Part shown: positions 28,901 through 38,563 of the stretch, in pieces
How positions within the stretch are numbered: the first letter of the stretch is position 1
Layout of the letters: each line of letters opens with the position of its first letter
Source of the DNA: Phaeosaccion multiseriatum
Taxonomy: Eukaryota > Protista > Ochrophyta, other classes
Length of the DNA: 64,000 nt
NCBI GenBank assembly: GCA_965112735.1
Contig: OZ218963.1
Location: forward strand, 1,674,001 to 1,738,000
Direction: 5' to 3'
Notes under the pieces: generated by a model
What the model saw: only the letters and a program-made list of their open reading frames with translations
Told to the model about the DNA's origin: nothing
Database searches by the model: none
Translations under genes and position numbers: made by a program

Positions 28901-30658
28901 CATTCAATCGCACACCTCTCTGCCTTGGCTGGTCGGGTAGTGCTGAAGACAGGAGAAGGAGGAGCCCGTAGACTCTTGCAGCTGGGAGGCACAAGTACCG
29001 TTGACCCCAGGCGGTAGGGTCGCCACGGAGGGAATGAGCTCAATGGTGGTCTTGTCCAAAATGCTAAGGGCAATGGTCAGTACCACTCCGACAGCGTAGG
29101 CGAGGTAGGTGAGCACAATCAAGGTGACCTGTGCAAGACATAGAGAGAGTCAGAGGGCCAAGGCACAGAGGGGAGGGAGAGGACGGCTGGGCTGAGCAAG
29201 AGAGACGAAGGAGCAGGACAGGATAGTAACAAAGAGGAGCAGGAAACACGACAGGATAAAACCTAGATGCATGCACTCAAGCGTAGTGGGCACGACCTAC
29301 TTGACTCACCGTAAGCGAAGCAGGCATAACCTCCATCAATATCTTGGGCTCCTGCCATTGGGTTAGCTTCACCTCCCTGACCGGCCAGTCCGAGGAGAGA
29401 TAGAGAGGAGCGCATGTATGGAAAGAAAGGCCAAGGTGAGTTGGTGAGGTGATTTGCATTGAAGAAACGAAAGGGGGATCAATCAATGCCTCTGCCTCTG
29501 CCTCCCTCACCCTCACTTACCTGTGGTCCAAGACAACGTCGCCAAAGAAGTGCATGAGGCTGAAGGCGCTCTTCTGTGGGGCGGTCTTCTCTCCTGCCGC
29601 AGCTGAGCCCGACCTGTCTCCTAGCATCCCCCTTGTCTCCTCCCCTCCGTGGGCCTTTCCCTCCTTTAGACCTTCTTCCAACGATGTAAGGAGTCGAGCA
29701 CTTGCTCCTCCTCCACCGCCCCCTCCCTTACCCTGCCCCCTTGGCAGAGTCTCTGTGAGAGCATCGCCCCCTTCAATGTCAGCATCCAGCACCTTTTCGG
29801 CTGCGCGTAGATTGCCTTTTCGAAAAGGGAGATTGCCTGTTTGAAAAGGGGACGCAGCAGAGGGAGAAGGCACAAGGGCCTGATCCTGGGCGGGCCTGAG
29901 CATGCCTGTGAGTGAGTGAGGGAGAGGGGAGGTGAGAGAGAGAGAGATATATAGAGAGAGAGAGTGGCGAGGGAGAGGGGAGGGGAGAGAGAGTGGGGAG
30001 GGAAAGAGGAGGTGAGAGAGTGGTGAGGGAGAGGGGAGGTGAGAGAGAGAGTGGTGAGGGAGCACCGCATGCTGTGGAAAAGAAACAACGCCCGGAGCAG
30101 AGTCTTTGTGTAAGCATCGAATACATATGAAGAGAGAGAGCGTCTGCACGCAGCGTGTTGTAGCAAGTACTACCTCCCCTCACCTGTCCGCAGCATTGGC
30201 ATTGACGCCGTCCTGGAAAGCCCTCGGTCCCTAGGGGGGAGGTGGTGGTCATTGTCATCTTTCTCCGCCCTCGTGTCCAAGCCGTCCTCCTTTCCCTCAT
30301 CCCCGCCCTTTCCTCCTCCTCCTCCTCCTCCTCCTCCTCCTCCTCCTCCTCCTCCTCCTCCTCCTCCTCCTCCTCCTCCTCCTCCTCCTCCTCCTCCTCC
30401 TCCTCCTCCTCCTCCTCCTCCTCCTCCAGCCTCTCGGAAATGCCTGCCTGTGCTGCCCACTCTGCTGTAGCGCACAGTCTCCTGCAAAGGGGCATCCTTC
30501 TCATCTTCCCGATTGCCCTCAGAAGTGGCGCGGTGCCGGTCAGCCCGTCTCCATGACTGCTGCTGCTGCTGCTGCTGCTGCCGCCGCGGAGCGTCTGGCT
30601 TCTCGCTATTGGGGAGAGAGGAATCTGATCTCTCGTCCTCGTCAGCGGCAGGCCGCAT
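19398..30658 (-). CDS. Multi-pass membrane protein (TMEM181/Wntless-like N-terminal part) fused to class-3 lipase, many exons
   Basis: Lipase motifs IVSFRGS, VHTGFWEAY, FVTGHSLGGALA, LYTFGQPRVGN, RVVVDGDIVP, YTHVG and MHSLEAY. Upstream hydrophobic exons carry EQRWLVFLGLGTFLLANP, RYQQLSYRF and IYVLYLPP. All are on one strand with splice signals. Start at 30658 is inferred from in-frame splicing. Confidence 0.8.
20686..20772 (+). repeat. Intronic ~11-bp tandem repeat (GTATCCTCAAG / ATTCATCTAAG)
   Basis: Directly visible alternating units. Confidence 0.7.
30311..30427 (+). repeat. (CCT)n microsatellite, poly-Gly in predicted exon 1 of the lipase gene
   Basis: Directly visible. Confidence 0.95.
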
Positions 30659-30802: not shown

Positions 30803-33800
30803 ATGGAGCTATCTGGTGCAGAGGAGGGCAAGAGCAGTAGTGCCCCTGTGCCCCCAGTGGTGGAGAACCAAACGGCCGGAAGGTAAGAAAACACTGAAAA
30901 CCAAACTGCCAGAGAGAGAGAGCGAGGAAGAGCGGCGGCGGGAACTAAACTGCGCTTCCGGTGATGTGTCCGACAGGGATGCTTTCCAGAGCTATATGTC
31001 CAAGCTCAAGACGCAAGGGCAGGCCCTCAAAGAGGTTCGTACAATGGGAAGGAAGGATGGACGGAGATATAATATCATCAACGGCCTTCCCTCAACTGTT
31101 GCTGCTGTGCTGTTTACGTATACACTGGGTGCATTGACACAGTTCCGACCGAGCGACATGAGTCACTCAGTGCTGGTGCCACCCCTTCCTCACCTGCCCC
31201 CCCGCCAAGCTGTGGCTGCCACTGGTGCTGGCACCCCACCCACCATGGAGTGGGGCGCTTGGGGGGGGCAGGCCAAGCCGTACACGGTAAGTAAGAGACT
31301 GTACTCCGCAGCAACACAGTCCAGATGCACCAGCTCTGAGTCAGTTGTGCTCTCGCTGCTCCCAGGAATACATGGACGAGTACGCGACACGCTACAAGGT
31401 GGTGGACAGACCCACCTCTATGCTTGCCAATGCCCGCCGGCCCATTCACGACGACGCCCTTCGGGCCGTTGAGCGGCGGTGGTCCGGACAAGAAGCATCC
31501 AGCTTCGGCAACGAAGCAAGGTTTGCCTCCTCCAAGAAGGCACAGCAGAGGGGAAGGGTGCAAGAAAACGAGGCGACGAGAAAGAGGGACGCCTGCAGCA
31601 CAGGCGGTGAATATGGCCAAGGCACGAGAGATGGCGAAGAGTCGGCAGCTTCTGTGACTTCCGCGTCCTCTTCCTCTTCACTTGGCAATGGCGAGCCTAG
31701 TGGTGCTGCCAATCACTCCCCACGGGTGACTCCGCTCGTCGACACTCTCCCGTCCAAGTCTACCAATCGTGGATCTTCGCTTTCGCCCTCTTCATCCTTT
31801 GAAGCCCCTCACCGCGGGCGAGCTGCTAGCGAGGACTTACAGGAGGAGCAGCGGGAGGATCCCCCCCCAGTACAGCCACTGGTCAGGCCTTCGCGACTCC
31901 TCTGTCAGATCAATGCCCCTCCAGCCGGCCTGGCCACGAAGCGCGAAGAAGGGACGGACCCGTATGGGCCGATCTGGGCTGAGATGATTGTGAAGCCCGA
32001 TGCTATTTCCCTGTCCGGAGCAGCAGGAGTAGCACCCGCCCGTGCAGCGAGGGAGGAGACCCTCGTGGACACCGAATACCACAGCAATTTCAAGGTCGGT
32101 GGGGACACGCAGTGGGGAGGAGTGGGGGGCCATGTGCTGTGCACACATGTGTGTGACACAAGGAAGGACACAGTAGAAGAGCTGCCTCCTTTGGGGAGAG
32201 TTTTTCCTTTTGGCGCCTTTCTGGTCATGAACTCAGAGAGTGGGTCGCGCTTCGACGAGCACAGCAAAACATTTTGAGAGCAATTCTTCTCCCATCCCCG
32301 CTTGCCTTGACCCTTGAGTCCGTTCTTCTCTCTTGCCTCTCTTGTTTCCTCCTTTATCCCCCCCTCCTTCCCATCTCCTTCTCCTCCTCCTCCTCCTCCT
32401 CCTGCTGCTGCTGCAGTGGCCCCCTGAGCAAGCGTTCCACCCCAAAACCTACGAGGGCACGACGAACAGCGAGAGGGAAATGGCCGAGCTCACGGCAATA
32501 GAGTATGACGAGGTCGCTCAAGCACAAGACCAAGTGAAGGAGGATGGTCGACCCGGGTCTCCAGCAGACAGGCAAGATGTGCTCAAGCGCTGGGCTGGGG
32601 CGCACACCAAGGGCCCGCAAAAGTCCGAGCATGCCAGCTCCTTCCGGTGGCCCCCACACGCAGATGATGAAAGGAGGGCGGGAATGACGACGACAAAGAC
32701 AAGTGCAGAACTATCCGGCAACCTTCTTGGGCAAGCTTCTCCTCTCTCCCAGCGCTCTACCGCGGCCTCGACCGACAGCTTGAAGGGGCTGAACGAACTC
32801 ATGTCCACCACCCGCAGGCCGAGTCGCTGCTCCACCGCCTCAGAGGAGGGAAGCGGGGCACGGAGCACAGGGATGGCCTCGAGTGTGTTGGATCGCACGA
32901 CTGAGTACGATGATAGGTTTGTCCGCTTCCCTAGCGACAACTACCGGGGCGGGCTACATCATAGTCATGGGGCAGGGCCGGAGCAAGACCATGTCGATGC
33001 ACTGCTCCACCCCACCAGGACCGAGCCCGACGAGGAGGAGGAGCCTGCGCAGGAGCAACACCAGGGTGATGATGGTATTGCTACTGCTGATGCTGGTGCT
33101 AGGGGGAAGAGGCCTCTTCTCAATATGGAGAGCGTGGCACGGGAACCTTTGGCACAAACGCCAACGCCGGCGTCAATCGCGGCGCCCGGCATGCGGGAGG
33201 CTGAGGCCGAGAGCGGCCCTCCTGAGATGTGGCAGACAGAGTATCAGGACGAGTTCGAGTGGATGCCCAAGGGTAGCTATGTGACCGGTCTACACCACAA
33301 GCACGGAGGCAGAGCGGCGGATGACCATGTGGATCAGCTGCTTCACACCACTGGGGCCAAGTCCGAGGATGGTGCCCAGGATGAGGTCCACGAGGGAGAG
33401 CGAGAGGGGGGTGAAAGGAAACAGGGCAGCAGCGGTTCAGTCCCGGGAAGCACTCCTGCTCATGGTCTGAATGAGACGGAGTACCAGGACGAGTACGAGT
33501 GGATGCCCAAGGGTAGCTATGTGGCCGGCTTGCATCACAAGCACGGAGGTAGATCAACGGAGGACCACATCGACAAGCTGCTCCACCCTACCAGGGCGGA
33601 GGACCAGCCTGCCTCCAAGAGTGAGAAGGAAGGGGATGGGGAGGTGGGGCAGGAAGAAGAGGCCCGCGCCGAGGCAGCGTCAGGCGGAGGCGAGAATGTG
33701 CTGACGGTCGAGCAGGCCAGGGAGATGATACGGGAAGCAGAGACGACCGCTCGCGGGGTGGAGGAGACGGAGTACCAGGACGAGTACGAGTGGATGCCCA

Positions 33801-35125
33801 AGGGCAGCTATGTTGCCGGCTTGCACCACGCGCATGGAGGCAGAGCGGCAGAGGATCATATGGACAAGCTGCTCCACCCCAAGAGAAACACAAAGCCAAT
33901 TGCCAAGGTGGAGCAGGGCGTCCTCTCGAGGCTGTGGGGAGAGGCAAACGCATGCTTGAGGGGCATCGATAGCCACACTCTCCGGGAGCTGTGGTGTATG
34001 CCTCGCCCATCCCACGCGGTGCGACAGATACTCAATGTGCTTTGCGTGGTGTTGGGTCTTCTACAGTCTGCGTCGACCTCGTGGGAGGAGGTGCGCGCCA
34101 CGCTTCAGGCAAACAAGGAGACCTTGCTGAAGAAGATGAGGAGTCTAGATAGGCTCTCGCCGGGTGTTTCTACAGCCAGCCTCGCCTCCATGCGTACGGT
34201 GCCCGCTTTATCGCCCGGGAGCCTTGTTCATGTGTCTGTGGCAGGAGCGAAGCTGGCTTCTTGGCTAAGTGCCTTGTCTCGCTTTGTCCAGGCCAAGGCT
34301 GGCGACGCGCGGCCAGCAGGTGGCTCTCCATCTGCGGCAGCAGCCTTCTCGGATGTGCCCGAAGAGCTTTTCCAACGCGGCGGAGGCCGAGGCCCAGGAG
34401 GAGGGAGCATCGCCAGCTCCAGCTTTCTGCCCCCCCCACCGTCGAGCTACGACAGCGCGAGGCCGAGACACGCAACGCTAAAGGCAACACCTAGGAGGGT
34501 GACGGATGGCGACGCGGCGCTGCAGGTAGCTCAAGAGGCGAAGGGCGATTTCCACGCACGCGCACCCGTCCCGCCTCTCTTCCCGTCGTCGGATGTGGAC
34601 GAGGAAGAGGCCAGCAAGCACGGCAGTGAAGAGAGAGGGGAAGAGAAAGAGGGAGGGAGCGAAGGGCGCTCCATTTCTGGTACAAGTGGGGGCGGGGAGA
34701 GTGGAAGGTCGTCCTCCGGCGAGGTAGCAGCCTCAGCAGTTGGTGATACAGCAGCAGCCAGCGCGGGATCTTCCGCCGAGGCCCAAAGCGTCCGTTCGGA
34801 CGGCAGCAAGTCCTCAATATCGACATCAGCAGCAGGTGCTTCTTCTGTACAAAGCAAGGCCTCCCCACGGGAGAAGAGCAGGAGACGGCGAACTCCGAGG
34901 AGGATGGTGAAGCCTGTCCTGGAGCCCAAGTTTGGCTTCGTCGACGGAAAATGGACCTACAGTCCAAGGAAGGGCGCCACCTACAAGGGCGTGAACCCCC
35001 GATCCTGCGGGCTACCTCTCAAGCGGTATGATCCCATCCTAGCCAACCCCCGCTGGCCGCCGCCTTTGGGGGACAACCGGCGTTACTCGGTATACGAGCG
35101 GGAAATTTGCCACATGCCGTGCTAA
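30803..35125 (+). CDS. Putative microtubule-associated protein: TEY-x3-(F/Y) repeats plus isolated dynein stalk microtubule-binding domain
   Basis: Spliced ORF with a long last exon (~32417-35125). It has three near-identical TEYQDE(F/Y)EWMPKGSYV.GLHH.HGG...DH.D.LLH repeats plus degenerate copies. The segment LRGIDSHTLREL...PRPSHAVRQILNVLCVVLG...SWEEVR...VSVAGAKLASWLSAL follows. The start codon is provisional. Confidence 0.75.
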
Positions 35126-35994
35126 GTCACAAGTCATGGGCCACGGCTCTTGAAGGCTCGTAGGGAGGTAACTGCCGATTTGATGGCAGGGACCTTTCTT
35201 CTGTTGTAGACGTGCGCCTCTCTCTCCGGGAGGGGGGAGAGCGGGGTGGAGAAAGGCGACACAAGTAGCATGGAGACAAGGACAAGTAGGTGACGCTAGC
35301 TGCAACGGATTGTTGTTGTTATTGGAAACCCTTTCCAACATTCGACCATGAACAGCCCCGGTTGCGAATGGGGGGGGGGAGGGTGGCAGTGAGTGTACTT
35401 ACGTGCACGAGTACTTAGGTTGTTCGCTTTCTTTTTTATTACAAAACAACTTTAAAATTAAATTATTGTTAAGAGTAAAACCTGGGTGGGCGGACACACC
35501 CGTTTTGCGGACAGGGCCTACCCCCCCCACCCCCCCCCCCCCCCTTTTTCTTCTTTAGCCACTACTGGCGCCGTACTTGCCTCCCTGTCTTGGCCCTGCA
35601 TCTTACGAACACATTGCCACCTTTAGAAGTCGGGAGTAGGTTACTAAGGGACTAGGGAGGAAGAAGGGAATTGAAATCTGGAAAAGATGTTACTTTTAGA
35701 AACTTACGTAAGTGCGTCGCATACTTACGTGAGTACGTCACATCCTTACATAAGTACGGCACGTAAGGGAATTGGGTGTCTGTCCGCTGGGAAAATTAGC
35801 CCCCCCTCGCCCCCCCCCCCCCCTTTTTTCCACTTTCCAGAGGTGCGTGTGAATTTCTGCTCAGCGTCCAGAGTAGCCATAGGTAAGGGAGGCACAATAA
35901 AGCCATCGGAACCTCAAACAACCTGTATCCTTCAGAGTTAGCAGCAAAACCGATTAGCTGTCCGTTCACCCAGGTATCTCTCTTACGTAGGTAT

Positions 35995-38563
35995 TTACTT
36001 TTTGATACGTTTGCCTTTGCTGCTGCTGGCTTCCTTCGCGCCCCCCTCTTCATCGACAATCGGAGCCACATCAACGGCTTTAATCCAGCGAAGGGCCGGG
36101 AGGGGCAGAAGGCTGCTCAGATTGCAAATTATCACAAGCTGCCACAAGTTGGTAAAGTCCTTTTCTGTAACGCCGAGGGCCTTGGTGAGCAGCGCGCCCA
36201 GCTCACTCCCCACGATGCCCCCCCCATTGAAGATGGACATGAGCAGTGCAAAGAGTGTGCCCTCCACCCCGGGGGGGCAGAGCCGGGCGGCCAGGACCAA
36301 GGTTGGCATGAAGGCGATTTGTCCGAGGACGGTGAGAATGACGTCATCGCCGAAGGTGAAGAGCTCATCGGGGATTCCAAGCTGGCGGTTGACGTGAGTG
36401 ATGAGCAGCAGCTGCGTCATGCCCAGCGGCACCGAGATGATGCTGCATACGTGTTACCACACGTGGGGGGGAGGGAGGCGGGCAAGAGGGGGGTCGAGGG
36501 ATGACATCGGTGACTGGGGAGGAAGCTTACGCTGATGAAGGAAGCACCTGATTCGAATGCACCCCCCTCTACCCACCACGCTACGCCCCTCTGGAGCAAA
36601 GCCCTCGTGCCAACCAACCAACCAACCAGCCAACCAGCCAACCTGCTCCAAAAGAGGATGGTGCTGATCCGGACCTCCCTTAGATACTTTTGGAAAATGG
36701 CCACTCCCACCAGGCTGGCGACGCTGCAGCCCAGCCTCACTCTACCCAAGAACTCAGGGCCCACCCCGATGTCATTGGTGATAAAGTAGAAGAAAGCGCT
36801 GTCCGATGTGGGCGTGGCCTGCCATAGGAAGATGAAGAGGGCTGGAATGTAGATCTTGGGGTCTCTGATGGCCGCAAACAGCTTTGTCGCCTGTTCCTTG
36901 ACCACTTCCACCCCCTTGTCCGCCGTGTCTAGAATGGGCTTCTCGTCGATGATGAGGGCGATACCCGTGACTAGCAAGGGCAGGATCGCAGTGAGGGCAA
37001 ACACGCCCCTCGCTGACATGCTCTCGAGCAATGCCCCACTAAAGTACGCGCTAATAATCCCCCCCACGGCGCTGTGTGTACATACACACAGACATACACA
37101 CACGCCCGGAGGGAAAGACGAAAAGATAAAAGGAGAGACGGGGGACGTGGCGGAGAGTCAAGGGGGGGGGGGGAAGGAAAGTAGCAGGAGCAGCAGCAGC
37201 AGGAGCAGCAGCAGCAGCAACAGCAGTTGGTGATACAGAAGCACTACGAAGCTCGCTATGACAAGAAAGTGTTGGGCGTTTTGATGCGTTCACCTGCTCC
37301 CCCAGCACAAGGACTGCAGCCCTCCTGCGAGGTCGGCGGATTCCGAGTCGCGTGCTTTCTCCACCACGATGGAATCCGCCACAACGTCACTCACGGCCAC
37401 CGCCAAAGACGATGCTATGCACGCACCGGTCACCTGCGGCACAGAAAGGTAAGAGACAGAGGGAGAGGGAGAGAGAGAGAGAGAGAAGAAAGAGAGGGGG
37501 GGCGAAGAGAGAAGAAGGAGTAGGACGAGGAGGGCTCAAGTGGTGGGACGAGGACCAGCGCGGACGCAGCAGCAGCTCTGGAAGATGGTATGGTATTTTT
37601 AAAAACATATTCGCTTTCGCCCCCGTCCTACTTGCGCGCATATATTCCTGACTCATTCGTGGGACATAAGATGGTGTCTGGTGCAGGAGGGTAGAGATAT
37701 GAACTAGTAAAATACGTGCGTACCTGCATAGGGGTGTTGGCAAAGCCTGCCAGATACAGCCATGCTGCTGTGCCCAGCACGCCGGATAGCACCAAGTAGG
37801 AGCGACGTCGGTAGCCGAAAATTGGCACACCATCGGACAAAAAGCCGTAAAAGGGCTTGAGCACCCAGGGCAGAGTGAAGAGACCCGTCAGCGCCGCTAC
37901 TTGCGCCGGAGGGAGGCCTAAATCATCTTTGAGAAAGTACGTTGTCGCGAGGCGGGCCAGCCCCAGTGCCCCCTGCACAAAGTACACCACGAGAATGGCG
38001 AAGATGTCTGGCGTAAGGGGGATGTCACTGATGGACAGCTGCGGGAAGCCAAAGTCCCCATCCTCTGTTCGAAATGACGACGGAACAAGAGTCATCCACG
38101 GAGGCTCCTCCTTCTCTGGGTTGGTGGTGCGCCCCCCGCGCACCATTAGCTTCCCATTTCCTTGCACGCCCATGGGCCCTGCATCAATCGAACCCAGCGG
38201 AGCGACGCTCCCCATTCCAGTGAGCCATTTGTCTGCCTCCTCTGTCGTGTCTCCTTCTGCATCGTCCACCTCGTGCTGCTGCTGGTCTTGGGAAGTGGAG
38301 GAACCCAGAGCGCCGCACAGCAGCCACTGTGCTTGCGGGGCGGAGAAGATGTCCCGGCACTGCGAGTCAGGAGCTTGCTGGCGGCCCACCCTTGATCTCC
38401 CGCTCCATCTACCGCACCTGCTGCCTCGACTGTGGGCAGAGGCACCGCTGCTGGTCAGGGGTGCTGCCAAGTATCCCTCCGCCTGGACAAGACAAGCGCT
38501 GACCAGGCACCATGCTAAATGCAATGGTCTGCCACCATTACAGTCCCCTCGCGTCCCGCTCAT
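35995..38563 (-). CDS. Folate-biopterin transporter (BT1/FBT family, MFS), probably plastid-targeted
   Basis: [62 protein letters not shown] and [23 protein letters not shown]. The N-terminus is signal-like plus transit-like. Confidence 0.93.

Follow-up and report, generated by a model that had tools for sequence, protein, structure and literature searches.

The microtubule-binding domain (MTBD) of dynein binds tubulin at the intradimer interface, and the registry of the stalk sets its affinity (PMC6629372). In the open-access literature searched, descriptions of this domain are confined to the tip of the dynein stalk, where the motor's ATPase cycle determines its affinity. MDM1 and CCSAP are microtubule-binding proteins with (S/T)EYxxx(F/Y) repeats (PMC4626064, PMC13087473); MDM1 binds microtubules in vitro, and motifs of this pattern are required for it to do so efficiently (PMC4626064). 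Now named SAXO6, MDM1 is treated as a microtubule inner protein (MIP) of the Mn-motif type and cross-links to alpha-tubulin (PMC13087473). The minimal Mn unit has the syntax [TS]-[TS]-x(4)-[YF], and the shortness of such units defeats profile methods (PMC10973386). Here we describe a gene of the ochrophyte alga Phaeosaccion multiseriatum in which a dynein-type MTBD occurs together with repeats of the MDM1 pattern, hereafter TEY motifs. The gene lies on the forward strand of a 64,000-nucleotide stretch of contig OZ218963.1 (positions 1,674,001 to 1,738,000), which we call the window and whose numbering is used for the gene, and its core is contained in an open reading frame (ORF) of 930 codons without a stop (32333-35125, +). 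From its sequence, we consider it probable that the gene encodes a putative non-motor, static microtubule-associated protein (MAP) of ochrophyte algae, about 1240 residues long, in which the MTBD, or foot, and the TEY motifs would act as a multivalent binder. A known domain and a known type of motif are thereby combined in a new domain architecture; a search of open-access papers for MTBD-like or motor-less dynein domains turned up none that describes such a protein.

A dynein-type foot without motor or stalk

The stalk-less MTBD occupies 33914-34300 (+), corresponding to residues 837-965 of the gene model (about 129 residues), and consists of six short helices with short flanking helices. The segment is net basic, with 15 Lys or Arg against 7 Asp or Glu. 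By profile and by fold, it is a true homologue of the MTBD of dynein heavy chains (DHCs). With the ORF as query, phmmer gave weak matches in the PDB (E 0.3-0.7), two of three being DHCs aligned exactly at the MTBD. Profile A2 combines the window sequence with three stramenopile sequences (P0001, P0002 and P0005, described below) and includes neither a canonical dynein nor the Picozoa sequence P0003; with a limit of E 1, it matched 64 sequences in the PDB. All except one of these (63/64) are DHCs, aligned from H1 to H6 over the whole MTBD; the 64th, CFAP115 (E 0.01), is without any stretch that passes the threshold by itself. The best match was the Chlamydomonas dynein-c MTBD (2RR7, E 1.7e-11), with several axonemal DHCs of trypanosomatids and Chlamydomonas, each 4100-4200 residues long, at E 1e-9 to 2e-8 and cytoplasmic dynein at E about 3e-7. 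The best matches by sequence are single-headed inner-arm dyneins such as 2RR7, and cytoplasmic dynein-1 (3ERR, 6RZB, 6KIO) is matched too. Residues conserved with dynein include the E and P of ..E....P., the LG, the W, the R of H3, the D and the V of H6.

Further support comes from the alga itself and from the Pfam family of the domain. The best non-self match of a single-sequence search of the alga's own genome was weak (E 0.025) and fell in the MT domain of a genuine DHC, in which Pfam finds AAA_8, MT and AAA_9; profile A2 reaches the same DHC at E 2e-10. Features of the ESM language model, of which 207 out of 256 are shared, assign the segment to PF12777 clusters at 0.95. For PF12777 itself (MT, the microtubule-binding stalk of the dynein motor), the curated gathering cut-off is 24 bits, and the Heterococcus orthologue P0005 matches it with 19.6 bits (E 5e-4) over positions 89-208 of 344, its MTBD part. 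In a search of the alga's own genome, none of 51 PF12777 matches, among the matches listed, lies at the gene's locus, nor does any of those listed lie within 400 kb of the gene.

The predicted fold agrees with the sequence. Two AlphaFold models were made, one from an alignment that includes the canonical Picozoa sequence (A1) and one from the alignment without it (A2). The A1 model has a pLDDT of 75-89 across the domain; the A2 model reaches about 77-83 over most of it and 45-62 at residues 81-120. The A2 model reproduces the H1-H6 pattern, flanked by short helices; its helices span residues 8-23, 27-34, 41-53, 64-73, 75-84, 94-102 and 112-139. In a Foldseek search of the PDB, ranks 1-45 are all dynein, and the tightest match is the yeast dynein MTBD on microtubules (6KIO_M; TM 0.79, root-mean-square deviation [rmsd] 2.2 Å over 126 columns). 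In VIA-align, run against 48,161 representatives, the top four matches (Z 11.2, 10.4, 10.2 and 9.8) are all dynein MTBD or stalk structures, and entries unconnected to microtubules begin at Z 5.8. The initial annotation had seen a likeness to the dynein stalk tip at about 33940-34290, with no AAA motor; that likeness proved to be specific (E 1.7e-11 with A2, Z 11.2), profile and structure searches both matching the dynein MTBD, and the absence of a motor was borne out by the scans given below.

Three non-dynein chains also match in the fold search (33893-34330): 9FQR_Xl of the bovine sperm doublet (residues 1330-1495, Z 8.6), 9YA2_L of the Toxoplasma intraconoidal microtubule (residues 1207-1457, Z 7.6, rmsd 3.6 Å over 118 residues) and 9E5C_2e of the Trypanosoma brucei doublet (Z 7.5). 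They could be dynein-like feet of other MAPs that have gone unrecognised, or helical bundles that match by chance. A complex prediction that combined the alga's own alpha-tubulin (residues 1-440), P0032 (residues 1-430; a beta-tubulin 96% identical) and the MTBD was run without an alignment, and its score of 0.00 counts neither way. At C11:1755140-1766592 we observed two alpha-tubulin genes, identical and without introns, that are separated by about 7 kb; one of them is head to head with a beta-tubulin gene, and the beta-tubulin genes have an intron after ..NVVNKNS.

Motor and stalk are absent. Pfam scans that took in the ORFs of exons 2-5, all of the model except the 27-codon exon 1, gave no AAA family at E up to 1, and no Pfam family of any kind at E 1; the same kind of scan detected AAA_8, MT and AAA_9 in the genuine DHC of the alga's own genome. 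The predicted helices that flank the MTBD extend for only about 15-25 residues before giving way to low-confidence Pro/Gly-rich sequence, and the long CC1/CC2 stalk (about 100 residues each in dynein) is not present in the AlphaFold models. Within the protein, the last TEY unit precedes the domain by about 20 residues, and a Pro/Gly/Ser/Ala-rich tract follows it. The comparison with dynein is thus one of a six-helix domain that is homologous over its full H1-H6 length and has the same predicted fold, but that differs in its surroundings: the window protein has no AAA+ ring, linker, tail or long CC1/CC2 stalk, its MTBD lacks the flap insertion between H2 and H3, and the domain is the sole folded module of a protein that is largely disordered and carries linear motifs. 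Because ring and long stalk are missing, its binding would not be controllable by nucleotide state.

A further non-dynein gene of the same alga, at C16 about 968300-971400 (-) (L054 5284-7551 and 7860-8393), contains an MTBD-like segment that is split over two exons, ..IPHLVELSSLAFPPRPLLLVLKALAVLLGL.. and then ..ASQASLALARWLVAIFEYGEAV.., and is followed by a very long acidic Glu/Lys/Asp tract. It is likewise a foot outside a motor, but has an acidic tail and no TEY repeats combined with the foot. Since profile A2 reaches this locus only at E 4e-4, the C16 gene is no close paralogue.

TEY repeats and conserved architecture

Six strict and two degenerate TEY motifs are distributed on both sides of the MTBD. 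In composition-preserving shuffles of the 1239-residue model, strict [ST]EYxxx[FY] motifs numbered 0.016-0.019 on average and 1-2 at most, against the six found. The short motifs begin at model residues 94 (TEYMDEY), 330 (TEYHSNF), 407 (SEHASSF) and 1228 (SVYEREI); the third, read from the sequence at 32624-32644 (+), is degenerate and continues as RWPP. The remaining motifs lie in four long units of about 42 residues with the consensus TEYxDEYxWMPKGSYVAGLHHxHGGRxxxDHxDxLLHP. Unit 1, which is more diverged and was placed from alignment A3, lies at 32900-33025 (+) (TEYDDRFVRFPSDNYRGGLHHSHGAGPEQDHVDALLHPTR), and units 2 and 3 at 33236-33361 (+) (TEYQDEFEWMPKGSYVTGLHHKHGGRAADDHVDQLLHTTG) and 33476-33601 (+) (TEYQDEYEWMPKGSYVAGLHHKHGGRSTEDHIDKLLHPTR). 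Unit 4, a TEY..DHxxxLL unit at 33767-33892 (+), adjoins the MTBD and has a counterpart in the orthologues. At the DNA level, units 2-4 are 152-nt copies beginning at 33234, 33474 and 33765, and their 70-76% identity over this length suggests a tandem duplication of the last three units within the alga's own lineage. The peptides quoted in the initial annotation, and the repeats that it placed at about 33235, 33476 and 33767, are all present in the sequence. It had also assigned both modules to one gene, which they are: repeats and MTBD share exon 5.

A HMMER search with exon 5 against 1.84 billion representative sequences returned four short MTBD relatives and one low-complexity match. The relatives come from the brown algae Discosporangium (P0001) and Hapterophycus (P0002), the xanthophyte Heterococcus (P0005) and a single-cell assembly of a member of the Picozoa (P0003). 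In both brown-algal sequences, a TEY motif (TEYSDQYRW in P0001, TEYMDEYAW in P0002) is followed by DHVGRLL and, about 15 residues on, by the MTBD; P0002 additionally has SEYQDRFPWPP upstream. In P0005 and in two metagenomic xanthophyte-like fragments, DHVA(D/E)LL precedes the MTBD, and P0005 has an SEY motif further upstream. Between P. multiseriatum and the brown algae, the T, E, Y, D, P, G, DH and LL of the unit are invariant, and GHRGERTG stands in the brown algae where P. multiseriatum has its His-rich part.

Conservation extends to the C-terminus, where a module at 35012-35107 (+), LPLKRYDPILANPRWPPPL, is followed by the degenerate motif SVYEREI. Its counterpart in Discosporangium, found by tblastn at locus L040, is IPPKPYDPILANKRWPPPV, followed by KRTEYLRNFSW; it lies about 5 kb downstream of the MTBD exon, within a separately called gene. 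A xanthophyte-like contig (L051) encodes NPILMNTRYPPQP and, later, SEYESKFHW, so that the consensus across lineages is PILxNxR(W/Y)PP and then a further (S/T)xY motif. At 25-31% identity, the order of motif or motifs, TEY-DHV unit, MTBD, linker, C-terminal motif and final motif is kept. The architecture is conserved across three algal lineages, namely P. multiseriatum, brown algae and xanthophytes. That this order is kept argues for one functional gene under long selection and not for a remnant of a dynein.

The Picozoa sequence was dropped as evidence, its two MTBD units being identical to the letter and possibly an assembly artefact. P0003 has 392 residues, with two identical canonical MTBD units and identical linkers and without stalk-like flanks; if it is no artefact of assembly, a stalk-less MTBD has recently been duplicated in tandem in an unrelated eukaryote. 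A word-index protein search with the repeat and MTBD region returned no relatives, its candidates being saturated, probably by low-complexity words; the same type of search with alignment A4 gave only Heterococcus-like fragments, and a scan of metagenome contigs with A4 gave 366 pattern matches and no relatives among them.

Gene model and surroundings

The host nuclear genome comprises 67 Mb in 22 contigs, with 57% G+C. Its composition at first suggested an apicomplexan, a reading that we rejected since homologues of the gene point to stramenopile algae. Our five-exon model was assembled by eye; it has GT-AG at every border and encodes 1239 residues with no internal stop, and its exons 1 and 2 and start codon are guesses. 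Databases were searched with single exons, and the joined model served for counting motifs and for local tblastn. Tentative exon 1 (30803-30882, +) has an ATG, 26 codons plus 2 nt and an AAG|GTAAG donor, and its frame joins that of exon 2. Exon 2, also tentative (30977-31034, +), has AG/GT borders and an open frame, and the 108-nt intron that follows is in frame, so that read-through is possible instead. Exon 3 (31143-31286, +) ends in ..QAKPYT with an ACG|GTAAGT donor, and its junction with exon 4 rebuilds the first TEY motif, the T coming from exon 3 (joined sequence KPYTEYMDEYATRYK). The DNA at the start of exon 4 is 85% identical to that of the TEYQDEY repeat (family D3). Exon 4 (31366-32094, +; 243 codons) begins with EYMDEY.. 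and ends with TEYHSNFK (32071-32094); without splicing, its frame runs into a stop at 32277. Its donor is the GT at 32095, and the acceptor of exon 5 is the AG at 32415-32416, after a CTC-rich tract. Joining TEYHSNFK to the WPPEQ at the start of exon 5 mirrors the SEHASSFRWPP found within exon 5. Both the exon 3/4 and the exon 4/5 junctions are supported by the protein, since the splices recreate a TEY motif and the TEYHSNFK-WPP pattern.

Exon 5 (32417-35125, +) is a single open frame of 902 codons plus stop that contains the short motif, the four long repeats, the MTBD, a linker and the C-terminal motif. Uncertainty about exons 1-2 leaves the main point intact: the four repeats and the MTBD share one uninterrupted exon. 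The linker (34301-35011, +) is probably disordered; it is rich in S, A, G, R, P and E, contains the basic cluster KSRRRRTPRR and has no Pfam family, and the AlphaFold pLDDT falls below 50 directly after the MTBD. Searches with the C-terminal 76 residues found no paralogue in the alga's own genome and no match in the PDB, and the gene is single-copy in that genome by both the A2 and the C-terminal searches.

On the downstream side, the one covered by our check of neighbouring genes, lie convergent exons (35998-37103, -) of a BT1-family transporter of the folate/biopterin type. This arrangement bears on the proposal that the locus is a decaying DHC remnant or a mis-joined gene pair without function, an explanation that we regard as highly improbable. 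Dynein heavy chains are the only known source of the domain, and the runs that contain the locus are DNA contigs, which would suit this proposal; against it stand the 930-codon open frame, the absence of AAA debris in the gene, a downstream neighbour that is unrelated, the single copy in the genome, and the non-dynein flanks, whose retention at 25-31% identity in brown algae and xanthophytes implies long purifying selection.

Several simple-sequence features surround the gene. A perfect (TCC)39 microsatellite (30311-30427) precedes the putative start codon by about 380 bp, with (CTG)8 nearby at 30557-30581, and intron 4 contains (CTC)9-10 at 32375-32403. The intergenic region 3' of the gene has two long C-homopolymer-rich tracts (35521-35545 and 35805-35823) and, at 35702-35762, 2.9 copies of a 21-nt tandem repeat, ACTTACGTAAGTACGTCACAT.

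Proposed function

The reading that we favour is that of a static binder. A foot that is detached from the AAA+ ring and the coiled-coil stalk would have no ATPase to switch it between strong and weak binding, and static binding is the simplest reading because a foot without stalk or ring cannot be cycled. The foot would sit passively on the outer face of the microtubule, at the intradimer site used by dynein, and the TEY motifs may supply extra contacts with tubulin along or across protofilaments. With motifs flanking the foot, the protein would attach at several points and so tether, stabilise or cross-link microtubules statically. It would most likely do so in the flagellar apparatus (flagellum, basal body or root) or another stable microtubule array. 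That the genome contains about 17 DHC loci indicates that the alga builds flagella, and a flagellar, basal-body or root location is plausible.

How the TEY motifs are to be understood depends on their relationship to those of MDM1/SAXO6. The window protein carries more than the two copies (>=2) of (S/T)EYxxx(F/Y) by which that pattern is recognised, and it shares with MDM1/SAXO6 the literal motif, its multiple copies, their wide spacing and an otherwise largely disordered chain. Unlike in MDM1, the motif is set within a 42-residue unit that ends in DHxDxLLH, no similarity is detectable outside the motif, and a folded dynein-type domain is present. Orthology to MDM1 found no support, with no Pfam MDM1 match on the ORFs of exons 2-5 and no MDM1 in the HMMER search with exon 5. 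With SAXO, MAP6 and SPM1 (PF05217), the protein shares short repeated Ser/Thr-aromatic motifs and an extended chain, but PF05217 (SAXO1-2) has no match in the protein scan, its six-frame scan of the alga's own genome does not touch the locus, the Mn syntax is missing, and the period of the last five gaps is 77-112 residues as opposed to about 40. A search of the PDB, which holds many Mn-motif MIPs, with the repeat profile A3 gave no match at E up to 10. The initial annotation had called the motifs MDM1/SAXO-type; what stands is the literal pattern and its conservation in orthologues, and what does not is a profile link through PF05217, Pfam or the PDB, or agreement with the Mn syntax. Since Mn units are too short for profiles, the failed searches do not rule out Mn kinship. 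We therefore describe these as MDM1-pattern motifs, which probably contact tubulin; binding in the microtubule lumen would be a minority possibility.

Lumen binding is central to one alternative, in line with the initial annotation, a two-compartment binder whose TEY motifs would be lumenal Mn-type motifs in an axonemal or centriolar microtubule while the MTBD grips that microtubule, or one next to it, by its outer lattice. We consider this unlikely. In its favour, the motifs have exactly the MDM1/SAXO6 pattern (PMC4626064; PMC13087473), the reported shortness of Mn units (PMC10973386) leaves kinship possible despite failed searches, the alga has many axonemal dynein genes, and the ESM cluster nearest to the repeats is the Mn-repeat MIP SPM1, though only at 0.76. 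Apart from the missing profile or structural link, the unmet Mn syntax and a spacing unlike that of SAXO, such a protein would need an awkward topology, with motifs on either side of a domain that binds the outer surface, and the in vitro microtubule binding of MDM1 does not by itself show lumen binding (PMC4626064).

In another alternative, the MTBD would be the sole microtubule-binding part, and the TEY..HH.H..DH.D.LLH units would serve for docking of a partner, metal binding by His or phosphoregulation. This is a real, if minor, possibility. The His-rich part is specific to the lineage, being replaced by GHRGERTG in brown algae, the repeats have no homology to known MIP families, and unit 4 is modelled by AlphaFold with low confidence except for a short helix over DHMDKLLH. 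The residues of the unit that are invariant between P. multiseriatum and brown algae include the T, E and Y of the motif itself, however, and copies of the strict motif also stand apart from the long units, at either end of the protein and in orthologues, which fits a repeated tubulin-contact motif.

Several observations weigh against a static binder that uses both foot and motifs. The window's own protein gives no match to PF12777 at E up to 10, and in the HMMER alignment DS takes the place of the KK that mouse dynein-1 has in H1; judging from this substitution, the affinity and even the binding site may differ from those of dynein. For the TEY units, no profile links them to SAXO, MAP6 or MDM1 (Pfam, the PF05217 genome search and the PDB), the Mn syntax [TS]-[TS]-x(4)-[YF] occurs 0 times in the 1239-residue model against a shuffle mean of 1.2, and the motifs are 77-236 residues apart (77-112 in the last five gaps), compared with about 40 in SAXO proteins. 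The score of 0.76 with which the repeats fall nearest to SPM1 is often reached by shuffled sequences. As to the gene itself, the start codon and exons 1-2 are guessed, and the four public runs that contain the locus are DNA contigs of one sample, in which the apparent joints are repeat artefacts and not splices.

A possible functional analogue of a static foot is Toxoplasma ICMAP2, a non-motor MAP whose globular domain sits at 8-nm intervals on one of the intraconoidal microtubules. When it is lost, the microtubules of the pair come apart, and it reportedly binds between protofilaments (PMC12819142). Like the protein proposed here, it would be a static outer-lattice foot that links microtubules. 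Chain 9YA2_L is probably ICMAP2, judging from size only, and its Z of 7.6 is within the chance range for helical bundles; ICMAP2 and the window protein have no sequence link. A bolder proposal, which we offer as speculative and rather doubtful, is that the dynein foot has become a portable module in several unrelated scaffolds of ochrophytes. Here it would form an ATP-free 'dead dynein' cross-bridge, with Mn-type TEY motifs anchoring the chain along or inside one microtubule and the foot gripping the outer lattice of its neighbour, and would thereby keep doublets, flagellar roots or centriolar microtubules at a fixed spacing.

Altogether, a foot that is conserved without engine or stalk suggests that the dynein MTBD is a self-sufficient, transferable microtubule-binding module, and it would provide a natural minimal MTBD for lattice recognition without effects of stalk registry. 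Its combination with motifs of the MDM1/SAXO6 type offers a testable case of a folded lattice binder cooperating with linear tubulin-binding motifs. The weak non-dynein matches in Toxoplasma, the trypanosome and bovine sperm hint that such feet may be spread more widely, and the gene points to unexplored cytoskeletal proteins in brown algae and their relatives.

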